Shown: positions 1-57,038 of the stretch, in pieces
How the letters are laid out: each line of letters opens with the position of its first letter
Position numbering within the stretch: position 1 is the stretch's first letter
Origin: Glycera tridactyla
Lineage: Eukaryota
Reading direction: 5' to 3'
NCBI GenBank assembly: GCA_965644265.1
Contig: OZ286460.1
Span: 52,824,001 to 52,888,000 of the forward strand
DNA length: 64,000 bases
The notes under the pieces: model-generated
What the model saw: the letters and a program-made list of their open reading frames with translations, nothing else
Database searches by the model: none
What the model was told of the DNA's origin: nothing
Made by a program: the position numbers and the translations under genes

Positions 1-158
1 ATCTGAATGTGTATATGTGTGCATGTGTATATGCATGTGTGTGGCTGTGTGTATGTGTAAGTGTGTGCTTTTGACTGGGTGTGAATCAACGAGGGAGAGA
101 GAGGGGGTGGAGAGAGGGGCAGGGTGTGTGGATGTTTGAGTTACTGGCCCACAACAAC

Positions 159-182
159 GTGTGTGTGTGTGTGTGTGTGTGG

Positions 183-221
<39 letters not shown>

Positions 222-242
222 GGTGGGTGTGTGTGTGTGTGT
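159..242. repeat. Interrupted (GT)n microsatellite
   Basis: Seen directly; explains the VC/HT-rich pseudo-ORFs at 81-345. Confidence 0.97.
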
Positions 243-486
243 ATTGCTTTCAGCTGCAAGTCTTTTATGTATTGCATGGGATCCATCGATCCATGATAAT
301 CAATGCAGCACTGATTTAGATCACTCGACCAAAGCTACATCATAAAATATATTGACATTTATGTACACAAATCTAGGTCACACATCATACCAGCAGAATG
401 CTGAACTCAGAATTATATCACCCCAGTCTTACACAATAGTATCTCCATCTCATATGAGATCACATTAGATTGATTGCAGAGATGAT

Positions 487-487
<1 letters not shown>

Positions 488-523
<36 letters not shown>
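488..523. repeat. (GATT)9 microsatellite
   Basis: Perfect tetranucleotide array seen directly. Confidence 0.97.
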
Positions 524-526
<3 letters not shown>

Positions 527-2379
527 AGCTTGAGGTCCACTGACATGTCTCAATCTATGGGATTACACTTTCCATGTACCACACTAATATTCCCAAATAT
601 CCAACATCGAGAAAATGCCTGATAAAGTGTGACCTTTAACATCACTCGAACATCACCAAAATGTAGTCTCTCATTGAGGTATATTCTGTGAAAGAGAAGC
701 TGAATTGGAGAGCATTCCAATGTTCGCAGATGGTCTTGTTGCCAGTTCAACTGTATTTTGTGGAAAGTATGAGTATGAGTATGTATTACTCCAAAGGTGT
801 GTGATCACAGAGTCAACAAGGCCAAGAAGGCAAGGCCAGTACTTAGGTACTCGATGGCAGGCTTGAAGTAGTACTGCGGGCAATTGTTGATACACATCTG
901 TTGTGCAGACCCTATTTACCTGAAGGAATCCACTTAGTAAGAGCGCTAAGCTTATTGCGGCCACGTACACTTGAATGTGTCCTGTTGACGGCATTAGCCA
1001 ATGGACTTTGCACATGACTTGACATTACAGTGGCTACTTAGCTTTCATTTAAGGCCGGATAATGCTCCTGCGGCCAGGTAGAACCTGATGCTATCGACTC
1101 GCTTTACACTTGTTATTGCTCCCTACCCACTCCTCCAACTAAATACCACACACTCCACACAACAACACAAATACAAAATCACTTTTTAAATGATAATCCC
1201 TTGCCAGTTACATCACAAATTGGTTTTAATTCGACCCAGAATTTCTCTCAACAAATACGAATTCAGAGAATTTCAGGTACTAGTAGTAGCGGTATAGCTT
1301 CTGTGTTGCCAAAAGTTTATATAATGATGACAATAATGATAATTCGATCATATTCATAATAATAATGATGATCATGATCATAATTGAAATAAATGTTATC
1401 ATCATCAGTGCTACTACTAATAAAAATCTCTGTCAATCCTAAGTGTAGTGGAGTCCTCAAAATAACAAAATATATATGAAGGGCATGGGTGAAAGTGGCA
1501 TTGGACAGTTGAAGGGTTAAGGGCCAGCGGCCCAGAGAGAAGGTAGCTGAGTGCGCAGGTCTGGGCCATTCCCTCTTAGCGGGTACACACTGACTCCATT
1601 TTAAGTGTAGTCTTTGATCTCGGCTGCCGGTTTAAATGCAGATTGTTAGAACGTGAATCTGATCCGAGATCTGGTTATCTCATACCCCAAGGCATGAAAC
1701 ACAAGGCACTGCGCCACCATCTGGTGGACACAAGATGCAGCCTGTCTCTCTCTGGCCTTAGCTAGGGTTTTCCCCCATCCTCCATCTCTTCGTATAATCC
1801 AGGGCATATTTTCACAGCGTCTAGTGACCAAAAGTGAAAGCTAACATAATACTCCTTGATCTGTGGATATTCAAGTTGAAGAGCCACTCATATCTTGTCA
1901 AATCTAAGTTAGTAGTACAGAAAAACCTGACACGAGAAGTGCTTTCTTTGAACAGGTGGTCTCTTTGATGGGGTTGAACAACAGGTTCCAATATGATACT
2001 CTCCATAATGACCTGATTATTCAAGACAGGTTGATGCTCTGTGGAGGTGGATTCAGGCAGATTTGACTCATTCTTACAACAGTAAAACATACTGGCATAG
2101 ACATTCCCCAGAAGAAGAACCCGAATATATATGTCAATTTTTTTCTTGAAAGCAACTCCCTCAACTCGTTGCACACTGTAACACATGAGGAAAATGGCGG
2201 AGAATCAGGAAAGAGCAGGGCATTGAAAACACCTGGTGGCAGTCTTCCGTGATATCATTATCCCTGGAGATAATCATCCACAAGAATATAATGAGAAAAG
2301 CAGACTGAAATGAGAAATAGGTAAGCTGATTGTCATACTCATCTGCTGGCGCTGATGGCTAAAACACAAACTCGGGTAC

Positions 2380-2417
2380 ACTCACCTAGAAAAAAAGAAG
2401 AGGAGCAAAAACATTAG
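2380..2417 (-). other. Candidate recursive splice site (ratchet point, zero-length exon); junction 2386|2385
   Basis: Minus strand reads CTAAT-GTTTTTGCTCCTCTTCTTTTTTTC-TAG|GTGAGT: branch consensus about 28 nt upstream, AG-free pyrimidine tract, and an acceptor abutting a consensus donor, on the transcribed strand. Confidence 0.65.
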
Positions 2418-4489
2418 ATAAAGGAGACGAATTAAGCAGCGTATGAAATATAAAATGTGTTCTCCCTCAAGCCTTCATGTAAGGACTAGAAGATGGTATG
2501 CTGGAAAGTAAAAAAATAAAGGATGGATAGTGCAAGTATTAAAACCCAAGACGCCAACACATATGTCATCATACCAACCATTTTAGAGTCGTAAGCACAA
2601 AGATGCCAAACTTTGGTGACTAAAATGACCAATTAGGGAGAGTGATGATAGCAATGGCTTCAATGAATCCACAGGAGAAATTCAAAAATTCGGTCAATAC
2701 CAGTAATTAATGTAGCTGTCAGTTCAGACACGTTCTCAGTTATATTTCATAGCATAAATGAGATCATGCATAGAATATTTCAATAGGGCACAGTACAAGT
2801 CATACCCAAGACTTGTTAATCTATGCTCCTATTCACGAAAATGAATCAAATGAAGGTGTCAAATCCGTGCATTTTGGAGCGACTGAGGTTAATTTGAGGA
2901 TGTAGGGCTCATGTTGGAGGGGGTTTGAGATGGTATAACCTAATGTACCAGCAGGTCAATATCTTATCTCGGTAAATGCTTCTCGGCACTTGGAACCTCT
3001 TGCAACTTGAGGTAACCGATGCAGCATGTGGTCTTACGTCTAATGGAGACAGCCACGAGTAACGGCAGGAAAATTGATGATAAAATAGATGAAACCACCA
3101 TAAGACACTCATAAGTAATTCAATGAAAGAGATCTGACAGGCCCAAACATATGGGATTTAACTACCATATGATATCAAATATTGATGCAAATATTTGCCT
3201 AATGTCTTTTGGTTGCCTGGCATCCACCAATCAGATTGTTCCTGCTGGGGAAGATATGGATATTCAGTTCATTTAATGCCATTCCACCTGATTTGTGGGA
3301 CGATTGTCAAGACAGAAGTTGAAGGAAGGAAACCAACTTTAAAAACACAGTTTGTGAAATCGCTGGGAGGGCGGGTGCCGAATGCCTACTTACACGACTT
3401 TGACACAGAACAATGGTTGTCATACCCATCCAGTGGCCTGATAACTTTAAGACACCCTCACCCTCCATTAGAATCAAATAGGCTGATATTTTTTCTAAAA
3501 TCTCAAATTGTGTACCTCGTGGACTTCTAGATCTCACCACACAAAAGACATCTCGAGTGTATTCAGCCTCTCATCATGAAATGGACTGTTTTGTGAATTT
3601 GTATACATGCAAGGAGGAAAATGAAGATGGAAATTTGATTCACGGGGATTCATATTTTAACCATATCATCATTCAAATCTAATGACTTTAGGACACAAAA
3701 TGATCCAAATGACCCAAAATGAAACTAAATTTGATGATACAGTATGACCTCTCAGGAAGTTTTTCACCAGAGAACTTATGAATGAATACGGGTAGCTATA
3801 TATATAGAAGAGGGACCAGCTAGGCATGAGAGGGTTAGTCAGTGGTGGCAGAGGGTAACTTCTACACCAGACACCTATCTCTTACGGCATCGAGGCCTCC
3901 ATGCATAACCCTCCTTATCATTCATTCCCCAGTTCATATTACATTTTAATGTTATTTCCCCTCTCTTATCAAAATTTTAATTTGGCCTGCTAGCTTGACT
4001 GGGCTATCATATTCAGCTTGTATTAGATAGATAGTGTATAGGCATTCTAGCAAGGTAGTGCTGAACCACACAGAACACCTATAATAAAAGTGGTCTTACA
4101 AAAAAGGATGGTCTGTTACAAGAGGTCTCAAAGTATTACCCATCAACAAATAAGGGAATCGAACATTGTGTCCATTAATTTCTGAATGTGTAAAATGTCA
4201 CAAAAATTCACCAAAATATGATAATCATAATGGCTTGCATCTTCACAATTGTTTCTCAGTTGGTGGAAAAATATTGGAATATCAAAATAGATGCCAGATG
4301 ACCTCTGCAGAGAGGAAAAGCAGGGCTGACCCCTAATGTGGCCACTCTGCAGGAAACAGTGCTACTCACGTAGCTAGTCACCAGAGACAAGCCACCAGAG
4401 GGAGATGTTGACCAGATTGTGCGACATTAAATGTGCATCAGTGGCGAGTGTGGGACAGTGGCCAGATGAGACGAAATGTGTGCTTACAT

Positions 4490-4635
4490 GACTACATGGT
4501 CATCATCTCAGTCCAGTGGTCATCTCCCCCTCCTCCCTCCTCTTTCTTCTACATCATCATCATCCTCATCATCAGCTCACTCTCCATCCCTCCATTCCTC
4601 CCATCAAATCACTCCCAACCATCCCCATCCACCAA
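4490..4635. repeat. Low-complexity (CAT)/(CCT) tract
   Basis: CATCATCAT, CCTCCT and CCATCC runs; explains pseudo-ORFs at 4433-4999. Confidence 0.85.
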
Positions 4636-6073
4636 AAACATTACTCACCAAATTGGCATGCGATTCAACCACATAAAAACCTGCCTATCATTCCACCCTA
4701 ATTCTATAGTTCATTTGTTTCAACTCACACTTATATCTCATAATATTATGAGCTTGGGGACAACAGAGGCTGCAATTCCGCTCAAAATATTTCAATCAAT
4801 GCCACAAGCTGTTATTTATTTATTCCTTTTTGGAGTGGGGTGGGGGGAGAGAATTCATCAACTCATTTACAGTTGTTCAAATCAGCTAAGCGATCTTGCA
4901 AAGATGATTTCAATGAATCAGCATCACAACAGCAGTCCTCTTTTTCCACGTATGTATTCATTACCATTTTACTGGAAGGGAACAACCTCAATGAATTAGA
5001 GATCTGATAAAGAGTGAATATCTCTGAGTATTTCAGATGGATGCAAGCATGGATGAGTTAATGGGCTACTGAGCTGTGTAGGTGAGTCCCAGTGGCTCAC
5101 AGGAAGCAGCTCCAAGCTCAGGTTCGCACTCATTCTCGGGCCATTTTAATTAGGCCAGAACTCTACGGCCAAGAACTGGTCAAGCATCGGGTGTGAGCGT
5201 GTGAGCGTTCACAATGATAAATGACCAGGGCTAGTAGACCTGACCAGACCTGAATGTGATTACAACGTCATTAGCAAAACGTTACTCACTAAAATGAGCC
5301 ACCTGATGACCTACTTATGAGCTACTCACGCTTCCATACCTGAGATCTGCTCACTTCAATAGAACAGCACAAGAAAATGAGTTCCTACTTCCATCTTGAT
5401 CAAATAAGAATAAACTTCAAACCCAGACCCATATTCATCTTCGTGATTTGGGGAGACTACACACTATACCTTCCACAGGTCGAATATGATCACCACAAGT
5501 GTGAATGTGAAGGAAATGAGTCATGAGATCACATGTTTATTGTACTCTGCACAAACTGAGAAATTCCTCAGCTCCCACAGCCAACTCCACATCATTAATA
5601 ATTCAATCCTCATATCCTGTATTTTAGTCAATTCTTTTTACCTTGAATCACATGCAAATGATTTTGATGGGATTGATGAAAAATCAAGATATGAGGGAGA
5701 CATCAGATGGTAGCGTTATGATGTCATAAAAGAGTTGCCGGTATTATGGGCCCACTGCCCTAGTCTCCATCACAGCTGATAGAGGGAGCCCTACAAGAGA
5801 GAGCCATGACCCAGATTTATGTAAGCCATCTTACAATTTGATCGCATGAAAACAAATACCAGGAGTCGGTTTATCAACAAATGATAATGAATCAATGAAT
5901 ACTGAAGCCACCAGTGAAGACCCCCTAAGCCATTTTGAGAAATTCACATTGATCCAACAACCATGTAAAAAATCTGTCATGACAGTTTTCAGCAATATTC
6001 GTGATCAAACATATCAAATTCCTGAACTACTTTCCTTCCCATCAAGGATTGTAACATGATATATTTTTGACTA

Positions 6074-6244
6074 CAGTGAAACCTGTGACAAAACTGCCCT
6101 GAATGCCAAGAATATTGGTTCTATAAAATAGGTCATATCTCACCAGATTTATATTTACATAGGCCATAAAAAAGAACTTCCATGAAATGATCGCTCAAGA
6201 TAGGCGCTCTCTTGTCAGAGGGTCTTTCATCAAAGGTTGCACTG
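6074..6244. mobile_element. MITE (Tc1/mariner-type non-autonomous element), 171 bp, diverged copy
   Basis: TA | CAGTGAAACCT ... AGGTTGCACTG | TA; interior aligns by eye to the reverse complement of the 36710-36885 copy (ACTGCCC..AATGCCAA..AAAA.AGGT..TCTCA..TATATTT). Confidence 0.8.
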
Positions 6245-6559
6245 TATCTCAATTTTGAGGTATATTGGTCCAATTGAGAAGAGTTATAATTTTGCATGTG
6301 TTGGTAAGATTCTGCTGCAATTATGTTCTGGTTGAGTAAAAAAGATTACATTTGGCCAAGAGCAAGTATATGGCGCAATACATTTTGTATCGTTTTGATA
6401 CGACGAAGATAGGGATCTTTGCATCTTTGAAAGAAAATCATCCGGGAAGAATGTGTGTTTGACACATGAATCATACCGCATTTCCTGGAAGAAAATATGA
6501 GCTATCTGATGGAATGGCTCCAGTAACAGAAACAGAATTCACCTTGGAGCATTTACTAA

Positions 6560-7060
6560 CATATATATGGCTATCACAAACGCTGAGTGCTTGACAATCC
6601 GCCACACATTTCAGAATGGGACGGTAGAGCAGCAGCGGTGATGGTGGTGATTTAGCAGCGGCTGATTTGGCATTGATCATTGCATGCTTGCTCTCCAGAT
6701 GACAGCCATCTTGTTTTCTAGCAGGAGTGGAGGCGCTAGGTTTGAGGGGGAGAAGCGTAACATGCAGCCTGTCGGAGCGATCATCGGATGCATCCGTCAG
6801 ACGTTTAATGACCTCACAATAATATCATTCGACTTCATGCTGCACTCGCCACTAAACCCACCCAGCACCCAACCAGCCAATAAACCCATCTCACCAAATA
6901 TCATCACTTCAATTGTTTTGTCGATATCTATAGATGAGATTGTGGATCATAACTCTGCGGGCTAGCAAGCGGCATCCCTGACTCGTCTCCACGTCTGCAG
7001 ACCCATGCCGAGGAAGCAGGAGCAGCTCATTAACTGCACCACTACTGACAAAAACACAGC
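6560..7060. promoter_or_regulatory. Candidate intronic enhancer / conserved non-coding element (boundaries approximate)
   Basis: Locally GC- and CpG-rich non-repetitive island; CGGATGCATCCG palindrome at 6785-6796 and TTTAATGA homeodomain-type site. Inference only. Confidence 0.35.
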
Positions 7061-8599
7061 GCTTCTAACTGATCCCAGTCCAGGAACTCAAAGAAGGGGC
7101 GATGGCATGCACACATGTTTCTCTAACAAATGTGTCTGGCGTTGGTCAATTTTTTCCTATAGGTAATGTTTTTTCATAAATTTATCATTCTTGCTCATAA
7201 GCATCTTTGATTCAGTTATGCTGCTGAATCATTACAGCAATTTGTATCAACATCGCTGAAACTCTATCCATCTAGAAATGAATTCCTGTATGAGATTATT
7301 CATAGCTGAATATCATAAATGAGAAGAATATGCATAAAATGTAAATCCAGCAATGAGCAAGTGCTACTGAATATTCACTATTTGTTCCTGGAAGTGAGAG
7401 CTCGTTGATTGCAATTATATTGCATGTGCAAAGAAATGACCAGATTCCTTTAGAAAAAGGCTTGCTCATGTCTACTGCATCCTCTTGAGGATAACAGATG
7501 ACTATGAAGAGGAGAAGTAGCTACACGGAAAGTCATTGGAGTGTAAAATGTTCAGCCATATTTGATTCCCATAATTCAGTTGAATAAAGCGTAAAACATA
7601 TTAGGATTCCATGCTGTGGGATGGTTCAGCACTTATTTAGGCATGCATGAGGGCTGATGGGAGAGAATGCAGTCAGACATCTCGGACTTAATCTTCCATC
7701 TTCTGCATCAGTTAATTGTCACCATCAGGAATTCTGTCACTTAATCTACATCACAGGCTATTAACAGCCGAGATGTACCCAAATTAAAACCATTGACTGT
7801 GGGAGGCAAGATTCCCAAAAATCCAATAAAACTTCATTCCCGGTGATGACCTCATTTCAGTGTGCAGGGGCCAGATTAAGCAGGTCAATGATCAGGTTGG
7901 CACACAGGAAGTCAGGGGGAGGTCACTAGACGAGTGCCGTATCTCGAAGACTACGCTCCTTGCCATCTAATCCACCAATCCAACTCGCTGATGGAATACT
8001 TCTGCATCAGTTCACCACGGAAATCATGCCCAAATATTCCCTAATTCGCACAAAAAGCGGCTGAAGAAGCTGCGGATTACAGACAATGACTGCGCCTGCA
8101 TTCTCACATGAGTTGTGCTCCGATGTGTGGCTGATTCCCCATCATCTTACATACTCCAAAATTGAATTGGATAATATGACTATTGGTAGCTGCCATATAT
8201 CTGGCTTTAGAGAAAATAATATCAGAATGGCACGAAAACATGGTGATCAAACACTATGTGAAAATAAGTGAGGTCTGGCTGATTTCCATGAGACTTTGAA
8301 CCCTGTCAAAATTGTATTTTTTTTTCATGATTACATGACCTACACCCCACTGACTGCTATTTCTAGGAGTATATTTCACACTAAAGAACTCGTGCAGAAT
8401 ACAGCTATGGAAAGGTTCATGTTGATTGCTATCTACATTTCAATTAAACATACATTCAGATGACTAAGTCTAGCCAAGTGAGGAGAGAATGGCAGACCAA
8501 AACTCATGCAAAGATACTTATGTTTTTTTTTCATTGGGAGAAGAATACAGACCTACAGCAATAAAACGGAGGATGATATGGTGTACAAGCTGATAATGT

Positions 8600-9790: not shown

Positions 9791-12700
9791 AGATCCTATG
9801 CATTGACTCTCCAAATGCAGAATGCCAAAGTTCTACATCTATCCCAGTGTCCCCTTGCAAACAAATTACCAGCACAGACTGAGGGCTGCACTGGTGCATC
9901 ATCACACGGTCTATGAAACATTGGTGGGAAAAATGCTCGCTTTGATAACAGCTTCATAGATAGGAATTGTTCTCGAACACCAAGAAGGAAACATGGCTGA
10001 TACAAATACAAGGATATGAGAGATAGCATCATTAGAGCAATATTTCTTGCACAGCTGCCTTCAAGAACAAAATAATAGCACGCAATTATGCACCAATGGG
10101 ACCACTTTGGCCACAGAGGGAATAGAATAGCGTGAATTCACAATCACAATCTCATGTTCTAAATTGAGTTTTTTCTTGTTTTTTTCATCCCAGGAGTAAC
10201 AGGGATGAGGTCTGATTCTGAGTACCCAGGGCCATGCCCTGGCCTAGGTAACAGCAGCCTGGTCACCAGGGTATGAGCAACGATCCACAATGACCTATCT
10301 TAAAGCCTCAACACAGATCAGGTGTATCAAAACATTCAGGAATGGTCAATTTTCAGGTTCCACATCATCAGTGGATCTCACTCAAATACTTCATATCGGA
10401 CACAAATGCAAGAAGCCACTGTCTCACTGAATTACAACACCATGCATATGAATTCCAAAGGCATAGAATCACTCCACAGTATCAGATTTCCTCCAGTCAT
10501 CTTAGTTTGAGCGTCATGTTTGTTGAGCAGGTCTGACTGCAGAATTAACCTGATGCAGAAAGCATGGTGGCCAGCCACATTGGTGTACTTTTCCTGGAGG
10601 AAGAATGGACACTTCATCTGGTGGCATTTTGGATCGTTTTCATCTGGCAGTGTTTGATAAAGAATCAGAGTAAGGCAGAGCAAGGTGTATCAGCATTCCC
10701 GTACCCGTTCTTCCCATTCCAGACAGCTGGATATCATTGGCCTAATCATAAAATGGGAACTGTCAGTCACAATCAGCACAAAGACAGTGAACTGTTTCTA
10801 AACACGTTATCCTAGTCGCTCCACAACACATGTATTTACCTGGGCAACAATGTGCAAAACTGCGCTATTGACGAAAAACACCCAAAAAATGTGGTGCTCA
10901 TCACGAATAAACACTGGCTGTCGGGGTGTTCCAAGTGCATTTCAGTAACCGCTCAACTGGCTTATGGGTGCAATTGGGGTATTTTCGTAACACCCCATTC
11001 CCTGATGGGCATCAGATGGCGTCTCGTTGCACAGTTTTCCCGCAGCTGTCATTTTTCATTTCTTGCCACAAGGTGGCGCTCTTTCATTCTGGGTGCTATA
11101 AGCCACCTCTCAATTACGATCACAAAATTACCACATGATGCTCTTTTTTTAGATTAGTTCATCTAATTCTGATACTGACACCAAGCGATGTTCAAAGGAA
11201 TTCAGCATGAAAACATTACTGAAGTCCTTATGTGTGCGCGCATGTGTTTGTATGTTTGTGTGCGTGAGCGTTTTGTGCATGTATATGCATGATATTTTTC
11301 CGCCTCTCCACCATAAAGGTTCCCATTAAATCTGATTTCCTTGACCGACAGTGGGTGATGATTTCAATAGTATCATTGAAATCATCCCCCGACAGAGCTC
11401 TTTCCTTCTTTTGATAAGCTCTGAAATTTTGAGCAGAAAAACCCACTAGATTCTCTGCTGAACCAGATACACATCATGGCATGCATCTCAAGAATAGATA
11501 CATGAAATTATTGTGTGAAGATCACAGTGATTTTTGTCAGTGTTATGAAAGAAAAAACTCCCAAAATGACAAGATGGCATGGGCAATCAATCATTCGTTT
11601 TTGTGACAGATGTCAACGAAAATGAGAGGGGAGAACAAAAGAGTTCAACTAGCCAGGTAAAGTATACACCCCAGGACTGTCAGTACATTGTATGACTTAA
11701 GTCTCATTCATCGGAGGAGGTCAAAATCTCCAGTGAACTTATGCAGCAAATGAGGTCACCTTCAAACATACTATAGAATAGCTATTTTGTGAGACACCTG
11801 TGACCTTAACATCCAACTCAGGCTGCTTGAGATCTCAGGATACCAGACTTTTCTGAGTCCTCTGGCTACAGTGTATAGGATTGACAGTCGATCAGGTTAT
11901 TTCCAGAATGTACAACTTCTTCCACATATATTACATGGTCTGTAGTTGCAGGCCATTTTTCTTGGTGTTACCTTGTGTGCACAATAACCGTAGCCTACTA
12001 TATACGCCAACTCCCATCACCCTGTGCAAACCACGATCCAATATGACAGATACCGTAACAAGCTCACACCTGACTAATTCCACTCTTTCATCAGCAACTC
12101 ATTCCAAAATGGCAAATGTATGTTTTGTTGAACATCATCTATAAGGATCTAGCATAGGGTGTATATTATCAACAAGGATAAACACCGATCTGAAGACAGA
12201 CCCAACTGCACTGTGAATCAATTCTATTGAATTTGAGCTCATCATCTCGTGCTATGATAAGAATAGGTGAAAATCAAAATGAGCATTCAAGAGTTAATGG
12301 AGATGTCCAGGTCAGATCAAGCTGACAATGATCATTGATGTGCTCTCTCATCCATTGTACCATCATCATTCATGTATAACCTCTGAATAATAATCTCTGA
12401 TCCACAAACTCATCCACCTGGCAAGTTTGGTGCTTTATAAGGATTTCAACAACAATAATTTCCATATTGTTGCAAATCTCTGATGAAAATCAGTCATTTG
12501 CATGTGCAGGTAACTTTCCATGGATTTACATGAATTTCATAGATGTTGCTCTCCACCACAAACCCACAGCCTAGTGAATGCCATATGAACACATATCATC
12601 ATAGCTTGATGTAGCAGCCAGAGTATCTCGATATAGCCCACATAATTCAGTTTCTTTTGCATTCATTGGAAGGTTATCATAGATTGATTATAGGGAACAT

Positions 12701-18951: not shown

Positions 18952-19137
18952 NNNNNNNNNNNNNNNNNNNNNNNNNNNNNNNNNNNNNNNNNNNNNNNNN
19001 NNNNNNNNNNNNNNNNNNNNNNNNNNNNNNNNNNNNNNNNNNNNNNNNNNNNNNNNNNNNNNNNNNNNNNNNNNNNNNNNNNNNNNNNNNNNNNNNNNNN
19101 NNNNNNNNNNNNNNNNNNNNNNNNNNNNNNNNNNNNN
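18952..19137. other. N gap (186 nt)
   Basis: Run of N. Confidence 0.99.
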
Positions 19138-28706: not shown

Positions 28707-28867
28707 NNNNNNNNNNNNNNNNNNNNNNNNNNNNNNNNNNNNNNNNNNNNNNNNNNNNNNNNNNNNNNNNNNNNNNNNNNNNNNNNNNNNNNNNNNNNNN
28801 NNNNNNNNNNNNNNNNNNNNNNNNNNNNNNNNNNNNNNNNNNNNNNNNNNNNNNNNNNNNNNNNNNN
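28707..28867. other. N gap (161 nt)
   Basis: Run of N. Confidence 0.99.
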
Positions 28868-28966
28868 AGTAGGATTGGGCTCCAACATTTCCACTCATCT
28901 CTGAAGAAGCTGACAGACCTGGAGGCAAGTTAGGAAGGTGAAAGAAAATAATGAAAATTCAACTCA

Positions 28967-29080
<114 letters not shown>

Positions 29081-49881: not shown

Positions 49882-50242
49882 NNNNNNNNNNNNNNNNNNN
49901 NNNNNNNNNNNNNNNNNNNNNNNNNNNNNNNNNNNNNNNNNNNNNNNNNNNNNNNNNNNNNNNNNNNNNNNNNNNNNNNNNNNNNNNNNNNNNNNNNNNN
50001 NNNNNNNNNNNNNNNNNNNNNTGTCAGAGACATATTTCCAGATTGTACTGGCAACAGGTCCATGAAATGTGTTCCAAACGCCCAAATTATTTTTTGGCTT
50101 GTATGGGNNNNNNNNNNNNNNNNNNNNNNNNNNNNNNNNNNNNNNNNNNNNNNNNNNNNNNNNNNNNNNNNNNNNNNNNNNNNNNNNNNNNNNNNNNNNN
50201 NNNNNNNNNNNNNNNNNNNNNNNNNNNNNNNNNNNNNNNNNN
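49882..50242. other. Two N gaps (49882-50021 and 50108-50242)
   Basis: Runs of N separated by 86 sequenced bases. Confidence 0.99.
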
Positions 50243-56458: not shown

Positions 56459-57038
56459 NNNNNNNNNNNNNNNNNNNNNNNNNNNNNNNNNNNNNNNNNN
56501 NNNNNNNNNNNNNNNNNNNNNNNNNNNNNNNNNNNNNNNNNNNNNNNNNNNNNNNNNNNNNNNNNNNNNNNNNNNNNNNNNNNNNNNNNNNNNNNNAGGC
56601 AGACAGACTGACTGACTGNNNNNNNNNNNNNNNNNNNNNNNNNNNNNNNNNNNNNNNNNNNNNNNNNNNNNNNNNNNNNNNNNNNNNNNNNNNNNNNNNN
56701 NNNNNNNNNNNNNNNNNNNNNNNNNNNNNNNNNNNNNNNNNNNNNNNNNNNNNNNNNNNNNNNNNNNNNNNNNNNNNNNNNNNNNNNNNNNNNNNNNNNN
56801 NNNNNNNNNNNNNNNNNNNNNNNNNNNNNNNNNNNNNNNNNNNNNNNNNNNNNNNNNNNNNNNNNNNNNNNNNNNNNNNNNNNNNNNNNNNNNNNNNNNN
56901 NNNNNNNNNNNNNNNNNNNNNNNNNNNNNNNNNNNNNNNNNNNNNNNNNNNNNNNNNNNNNNNNNNNNNNNNNNNNNNNNNNNNNNNNNNNNNNNNNNNN
57001 NNNNNNNNNNNNNNNNNNNNNNNNNNNNNNNNNNNNNN
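56459..57038. other. Two N gaps (56459-56596 and 56619-57038)
   Basis: Runs of N. Confidence 0.99.

Follow-up and report, generated by a model that had tools for sequence, protein, structure and literature searches.

The window, by which we mean the whole stretch of 64,000 nucleotides analysed here, contains a strong recursive splice site predicted in silico, which lies deep in a long Meis intron and stands out by its elements, its rarity, its strand and its position, and from these we infer each step of its use. We lean towards the view that it is a recursive splice site of the fly type (a ratchet point) that is really used. The best pyrimidine tract, an acceptor–donor junction and the best U1-type site fall within 80 nt of each other on the sense strand, a combination that is very hard to attribute to chance, and the layout of these three co-located elements appears to be that of a fly-type recursive cassette. 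Flies and vertebrates are the groups in which recursive splicing has been demonstrated; elsewhere it is known mostly from motif statistics. According to the original prediction it was also undescribed in lophotrochozoans, and our literature search on molluscs and annelids agrees with this, having returned incidental mentions only.

The candidate site within its host intron

The window has Meis exons on its minus strand. The features needed to describe the intron and the site are listed below; here and in the text, a slash within a motif marks a splice junction.

41609-41458, minus strand: 152-nt Meis exon, with donor GTAAGT
28968-29044, minus strand: 77-nt Meis homeodomain exon, ending TG in phase 2; the same exon is present in relatives
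28962-28967, minus strand: true donor GTGAGT of the 77-nt exon, from the sequence and its consensus score
2413-2417, minus strand: branch-point-like CTAAT, with the branch A at 2414, read from the sequence
2389-2412, minus strand: pyrimidine tract, with 19 of 20 pyrimidines, 13 T, and TT at −5/−6
2386-2388, minus strand: acceptor TAG, from the sequence
2380-2385, minus strand: GTGAGT abutting the acceptor, from the sequence and its consensus score
18952-19137, 28707-28867, 49882-50021, 50108-50242, 56459-56596 and 56619-57038: runs of N inside Meis introns

The 77-nt exon, whose 3′ end at 28968 reads ...AATAATTG, is presumed to be the upstream splice partner of the candidate recursive site. 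The next homeodomain exon (FINARRR...) was not found between 28967 and position 1, and because it is absent from 1-28967 the host intron must be at least 29 kb long, barring an exon in a masked run. The six runs of N within the Meis introns of the window are irregular in length (135-420 nt). Either 18952-19137 or 28707-28867 could conceal an exon, which would give the site a different upstream partner, and the first of these could, in principle, conceal the 59-nt FINARRR exon. Even with an exon in 18952-19137, the candidate site would sit 16.6 kb into an intron. Furthermore, as both relatives that we followed have a long orthologous intron, this masked run, which is 9.8 kb into the intron, is less likely to hide the next exon.

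Read on the minus strand, which is the Meis sense strand, the site consists of CTAAT (2417-2413), GTTTTTGCTCCTCTTCTTTTTTTC, TAG (2388-2386) and GTGAGT (2385-2380), and the sequence downstream, beginning at the junction at 2385, is GTGAGTGTACC. The 3′ and 5′ consensus sequences are juxtaposed at AG/GT on the transcribed strand, as in a zero-nucleotide recursive splice site. The site also has what is seen at ratchet points in the fly, namely a prominent tract with TT at −5/−6 and a usable branch point, and it is located inside an intron of tens of kb. The branch A at 2414 is 28 nt upstream of the acceptor G, and the zone above the acceptor at 2386 is free of AG for 76 nt, the distance to the nearest upstream AG. 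Splicing from the donor at 28967 to the site would remove 26,582 nt. The original prediction had described CTAAT, a tract and TAG/GTGAGT on the transcribed strand, with a branch point about 28 nt upstream, an AG-free pyrimidine tract and a position 26.6 kb downstream of the true donor at 28967; on re-reading, all of these statements about the sequence proved correct.

In the fly, the tracts of ratchet points are stronger than those of ordinary acceptors, and TT is present at −5/−6 in 196 of 197 of them (10.1101/006163). Fly ratchet points are common in introns of >40 kb in developmental genes, and they are conserved (PMC6110457). With its sense-strand location, 26.6 kb or more into the intron of a developmental gene, the candidate site belongs to the class that is enriched for recursive sites in flies.

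Two further motifs were seen close to the 77-nt exon. Fifty nt past its true donor, the minus strand carries an acceptor-like CCTCCAG/GTCTGT (28918); this is followed by AG/ATGAGT at 28900-28893, and a masked run begins just beyond, at 28867. The motif AGATRAGT has two copies in the window, both strands included, one being that at 28900-28893 and the other lying 43 nt past the candidate ratchet point.

Rarity of the site and the Meis loci of relatives

Candidate sites were ranked by a crude consensus score for the 3′ splice site plus the 5′ splice site, as distinct from a model trained on this species. On this scale the site at 2385 ranks first among the 446 AGGT sites in the window, with the runner-up composite score far below it. 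Its acceptor and donor score 24.25/8.0, compared to 21.5 and 20.5 for the true acceptors and 5.5 and 7.0 for the true donors. The site had been predicted to be as strong as the two true acceptors, and by this crude measure it is in fact stronger; that the plus strand holds nothing comparable was borne out when the whole window was scored. Across the Meis loci of three species (157 kb), the site is again the first, this time among 1,064 AGGT sites, with 1.84 against 1.49 for the next.

The rarity is also seen in the individual motifs. There are two copies of AGGTRAGT in the window, counting both strands, and the one outside the candidate site (+5080) lacks a pyrimidine tract. The longer pattern Y10-N-YAG-GTRAGT, allowing at most one mismatch, has one match against 0.10 expected. 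The pyrimidine tract of the candidate site is the best in the window, where the sense strand has two loci with tracts of this quality and the antisense strand has none. We also trained Markov models of order 1, 3 and 5 on the sense strand and simulated 12 Mb with each (36 Mb in total); no simulated site was as strong, and simulated sites that match real splice sites in strength appeared at 0.02-0.05 per 63 kb of strand.

Of the 17 best-scoring AG/GT sites of the window, the sense strand holds 13 and the antisense strand 4. Three top-scoring sense sites (45128, 28918 and 8552) have YAG/GTCTGT in common.

A search with the ORF that carries the 152-nt exon gave exon-level matches only, with identities no higher than 83-88% across 52-62% of the query. 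The sequences matched were the named lophotrochozoan Meis proteins of Pomacea, Capitella, Octopus, Tegillarca, Paralvinella and Ridgeia, together with short ORFs on long ENA contigs, and the collection searched contained no sequence from the same genus. These matches support the kind of animal, lophotrochozoan-type, that the original prediction had guessed. The gene for Pomacea Meis isoform X1 spans 142.7 kb. We followed the orthologous introns along two ENA contigs through the called ORFs. The intron after the 77-nt exon is complete in species 1 (ERZ21781341), where it runs for 25.8 kb up to the FINARRRIVQPMIDQSNRAG exon, and it is longer than 31.4 kb in species 2 (ERZ25767047). There is no comparable ratchet-like site in the 25.8-kb intron of species 1 or in the first 31.4 kb of the intron in species 2, and neither intron can be aligned with the window; the site is thus probably not a feature that the Meis intron has had since ancient times. 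The DNA of the exon shares only 88% identity with the relatives, and the intron next to it gives no alignment at all; therefore, the two relatives are too distant for a fair test of conservation.

The same contigs gave two observations on other parts of the gene. In species 1, the 152-nt homeodomain exon is present twice, at local positions 10163 and 10597, about 430 nt apart, with the second copy diverged, and the pair looks like mutually exclusive exons; the window has a single copy of this exon, compared to two in species 1. In species 2, the intron before the 152-nt exon contains a strong acceptor, then GTCTCTCAGAATTTACAA, then GTGAGT (local positions 4291 and 4260, one on each of two contig pieces), and GTCTCTCAGAATTTACAA is likely an 18-nt micro-exon, conserved between the two haplotigs of this species.

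The downstream U1-type element and the proposed splicing path

Every position on both strands was scored against the 11-nt U1-pairing consensus CAGGTRAGTAT. This brought out an element close downstream of the junction and, with it, a putative short exon.

2335-2345, minus strand: U1-type site CAGATGAGTAT, that is CAG/ATGAGTAT, matching CAGGTRAGTAT at 10 of 11 positions, the top match for both strands of the window
2343-2385, minus strand: putative 43-nt cryptic recursive exon, proposed on the RS-exon model in PMC8605326

The element CAGATGAGTAT lies 43 nt past the AG/GT junction, and its sole mismatch to the consensus is a change of G to A at +1. In 315 kb of real strand sequence, comprising the window and the Meis loci of the two relatives, it is the only match of at least 10/11. 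The Markov chance of such a match in the 80-nt zone is about 1.5e-3, and about 2.5e-4 for the version in which the mismatch destroys the GT; as the test was framed after the sequence had been seen, these values are something to replicate and not a proof. By the chemistry of splicing, an A at +1 bars use as a normal GT donor. Because this A is the sole mismatch, CAGATGAGTAT should bind U1 but stay uncut, and CAG/ATGAGTAT is presumed to be a U1 anchor that would be unable to act as a GT donor. The 43-nt unit begins G TGA, and when joined to the 77-nt exon it reads TGG TGA, a W and then a stop. It ends CAG/AT, and thus lacks the GT or GC donor of a cassette or poison exon.

Elsewhere on the minus strand, an AG/GT at 919 (CTTACTAAG...CCTTCAG/GTAAAT, 897-919) is weak in both its tract and its donor and was not counted as a site. 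CAG/ATGTGTAT, which is 22 nt past this AG/GT, is a 9/11 U1-type match, and here too there is an A at +1.

The intronic ratchet points of the fly need a short cryptic exon (RS-exon, about 50 nt) with a donor downstream to close it, and inclusion of the RS-exon is blocked by donor competition (PMC8605326). For the Meis intron, we propose that U2AF and U2 would recognise CTAAT, the strong tract and the TAG at 2386, and that U1 snRNP, at CAG/AUGAGUAU 43 nt downstream, would assist them, so that a short cryptic exon would be defined. The upstream donor (28967, unless there is a masked exon) would be joined to 2385, with about 26.6 kb removed as one lariat, and the junction would re-form a GUGAGU donor (TTG/GTGAGT), whose core is identical to that of the donor at 28967. 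The re-formed donor would then be spliced to the next acceptor, and the 43-nt pseudo-exon and the remaining intron would leave no trace in the mRNA. Since the A at +1 keeps the downstream U1 site from competing as a donor, the pseudo-exon with its stop should be left out of the mRNA.

Rival readings and known recursive splicing

A splice-like motif that arose by chance or neutrally, and is unused or only sporadically used without selection, is an unlikely explanation. It would fit with a single site that was chosen post hoc from a scan of many windows, with the pattern shuffles, in which 10 of 100 trials gave at least one loose match, and with the lack of an equivalent in the two relatives, whose introns are unalignable. 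However, 36 Mb of simulated sequence contained no site as strong, and the 80 nt in question hold, on the sense strand, the best tract, one AGGTRAGT copy out of two and the sole U1-like match of 10/11. The joint chance of this co-location is roughly below 1e-5 per window. The signals might instead have another source, for instance a mobile element with splice sites of its own or a nested non-coding transcript; we assign this reading very little probability. There are no repeats within 1-8000, no tandem or dispersed repeat at the site and no Rfam match there; none of the ten ORFs around the site has a match in the protein collection, the 121-aa ORF 200 nt downstream has no homologue, and neither the cassette nor its core 25-mer had an exact-pattern match in metagenome contigs.

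The strength of the acceptor and the stop that follows immediately after the junction could also be explained by a real alternative exon, either poison or terminal, which would cut Meis off after the W of helix 3 (TGG TGA). Isoforms of Meis/hth without the homeodomain are known, and they count in favour of such an exon. We nevertheless consider it improbable, as an exon that opens with a full consensus donor would be re-spliced. For a poison exon there is no good GT donor below the site, the best being the weak CAG/GTGTTT at +153 and CAG/GTCATT at +373, and the sole poly(A) signal below the site is ATTAAA at +1155. The A at +1 of the downstream element may itself be misleading, if it is a recent mutation, an individual variant or an assembly error in a former or polymorphic 43-nt cassette or RS-exon with donor CAG/GTGAGTAT. 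A G at this position would give an 11/11 match to the donor consensus, and the locus would then have the ordinary design of flies and vertebrates, with two competing GT donors; we regard this as distinctly improbable.

The reading that we prefer, a ratchet point in use, can be compared with those described in other animals. The Meis site has the same AG/GT juxtaposition, very strong tract and TT at −5/−6 as the ratchet points of Drosophila (Ubx, kuz, Bx and hth), and, like them, it is located in a long intron of a developmental gene. The cryptic RS-exon is about 50 nt in Drosophila compared to 43 nt for the putative one here, and both bear a stop and end at a U1-type site. In Drosophila this downstream site is a working GT donor that is outcompeted, whereas here it reads AT, unlike the RS-exon design as published, and cannot compete. 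The acceptor of the Meis site is TAG, compared to the commoner CAG in Drosophila. Use and conservation have been demonstrated for the Drosophila sites, whereas the Meis site is known from sequence alone. Fly homothorax (hth), the orthologue of Meis, has a known ratchet point that has been reporter-tested. Vertebrate RS-exons (Sibley et al. 2015; Blazquez et al. 2018, PMC6224609) are similar in that exon definition is followed by donor choice and inclusion leads to a premature stop. They differ in that the donors of the vertebrate RS-exons are functional GT donors and that the genes with such sites are for the most part neuronal and far longer.

The census of Shepard et al. 2009 (PMC2773006), which included no lophotrochozoan, put the antisense-strand density of ratchet-type motifs in long introns at about 0.1 per 100 kb for every animal tested. 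The sense-strand density was 0.5-2.2 per 100 kb in the five invertebrates (sea urchin, fly, mosquito, bee and beetle), which is an enrichment of 4-22 times, and the long introns of vertebrates have no sense-strand excess (PMC2773006). Our evidence is of the same kind as in that work, a motif only, in the form of an RP-type site on the sense strand of an intron of tens of kb; however, theirs is a census, whereas ours is a single site.

Finally, we tentatively raise a broader scheme, which is possible although rather doubtful: that giant introns in this lophotrochozoan are removed stepwise, with the cryptic exon defined by an uncuttable U1 anchor (A at +1), and that the cassette at 2335-2417 is one instance of it. 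If true, the uncuttable anchor would allow exon definition without the risk of including the stop-bearing pseudo-exon, and it would replace the donor competition of flies and vertebrates as a new variant of RS-exon definition. The site with A at +1 raises the idea that the cryptic exon might be defined independently of donor competition, by which its exclusion from mRNA is currently explained. Given the parallel with hth, a verified Meis site in a lophotrochozoan would, if the reading is true, mean that long developmental genes make use of the mechanism throughout the protostomes.
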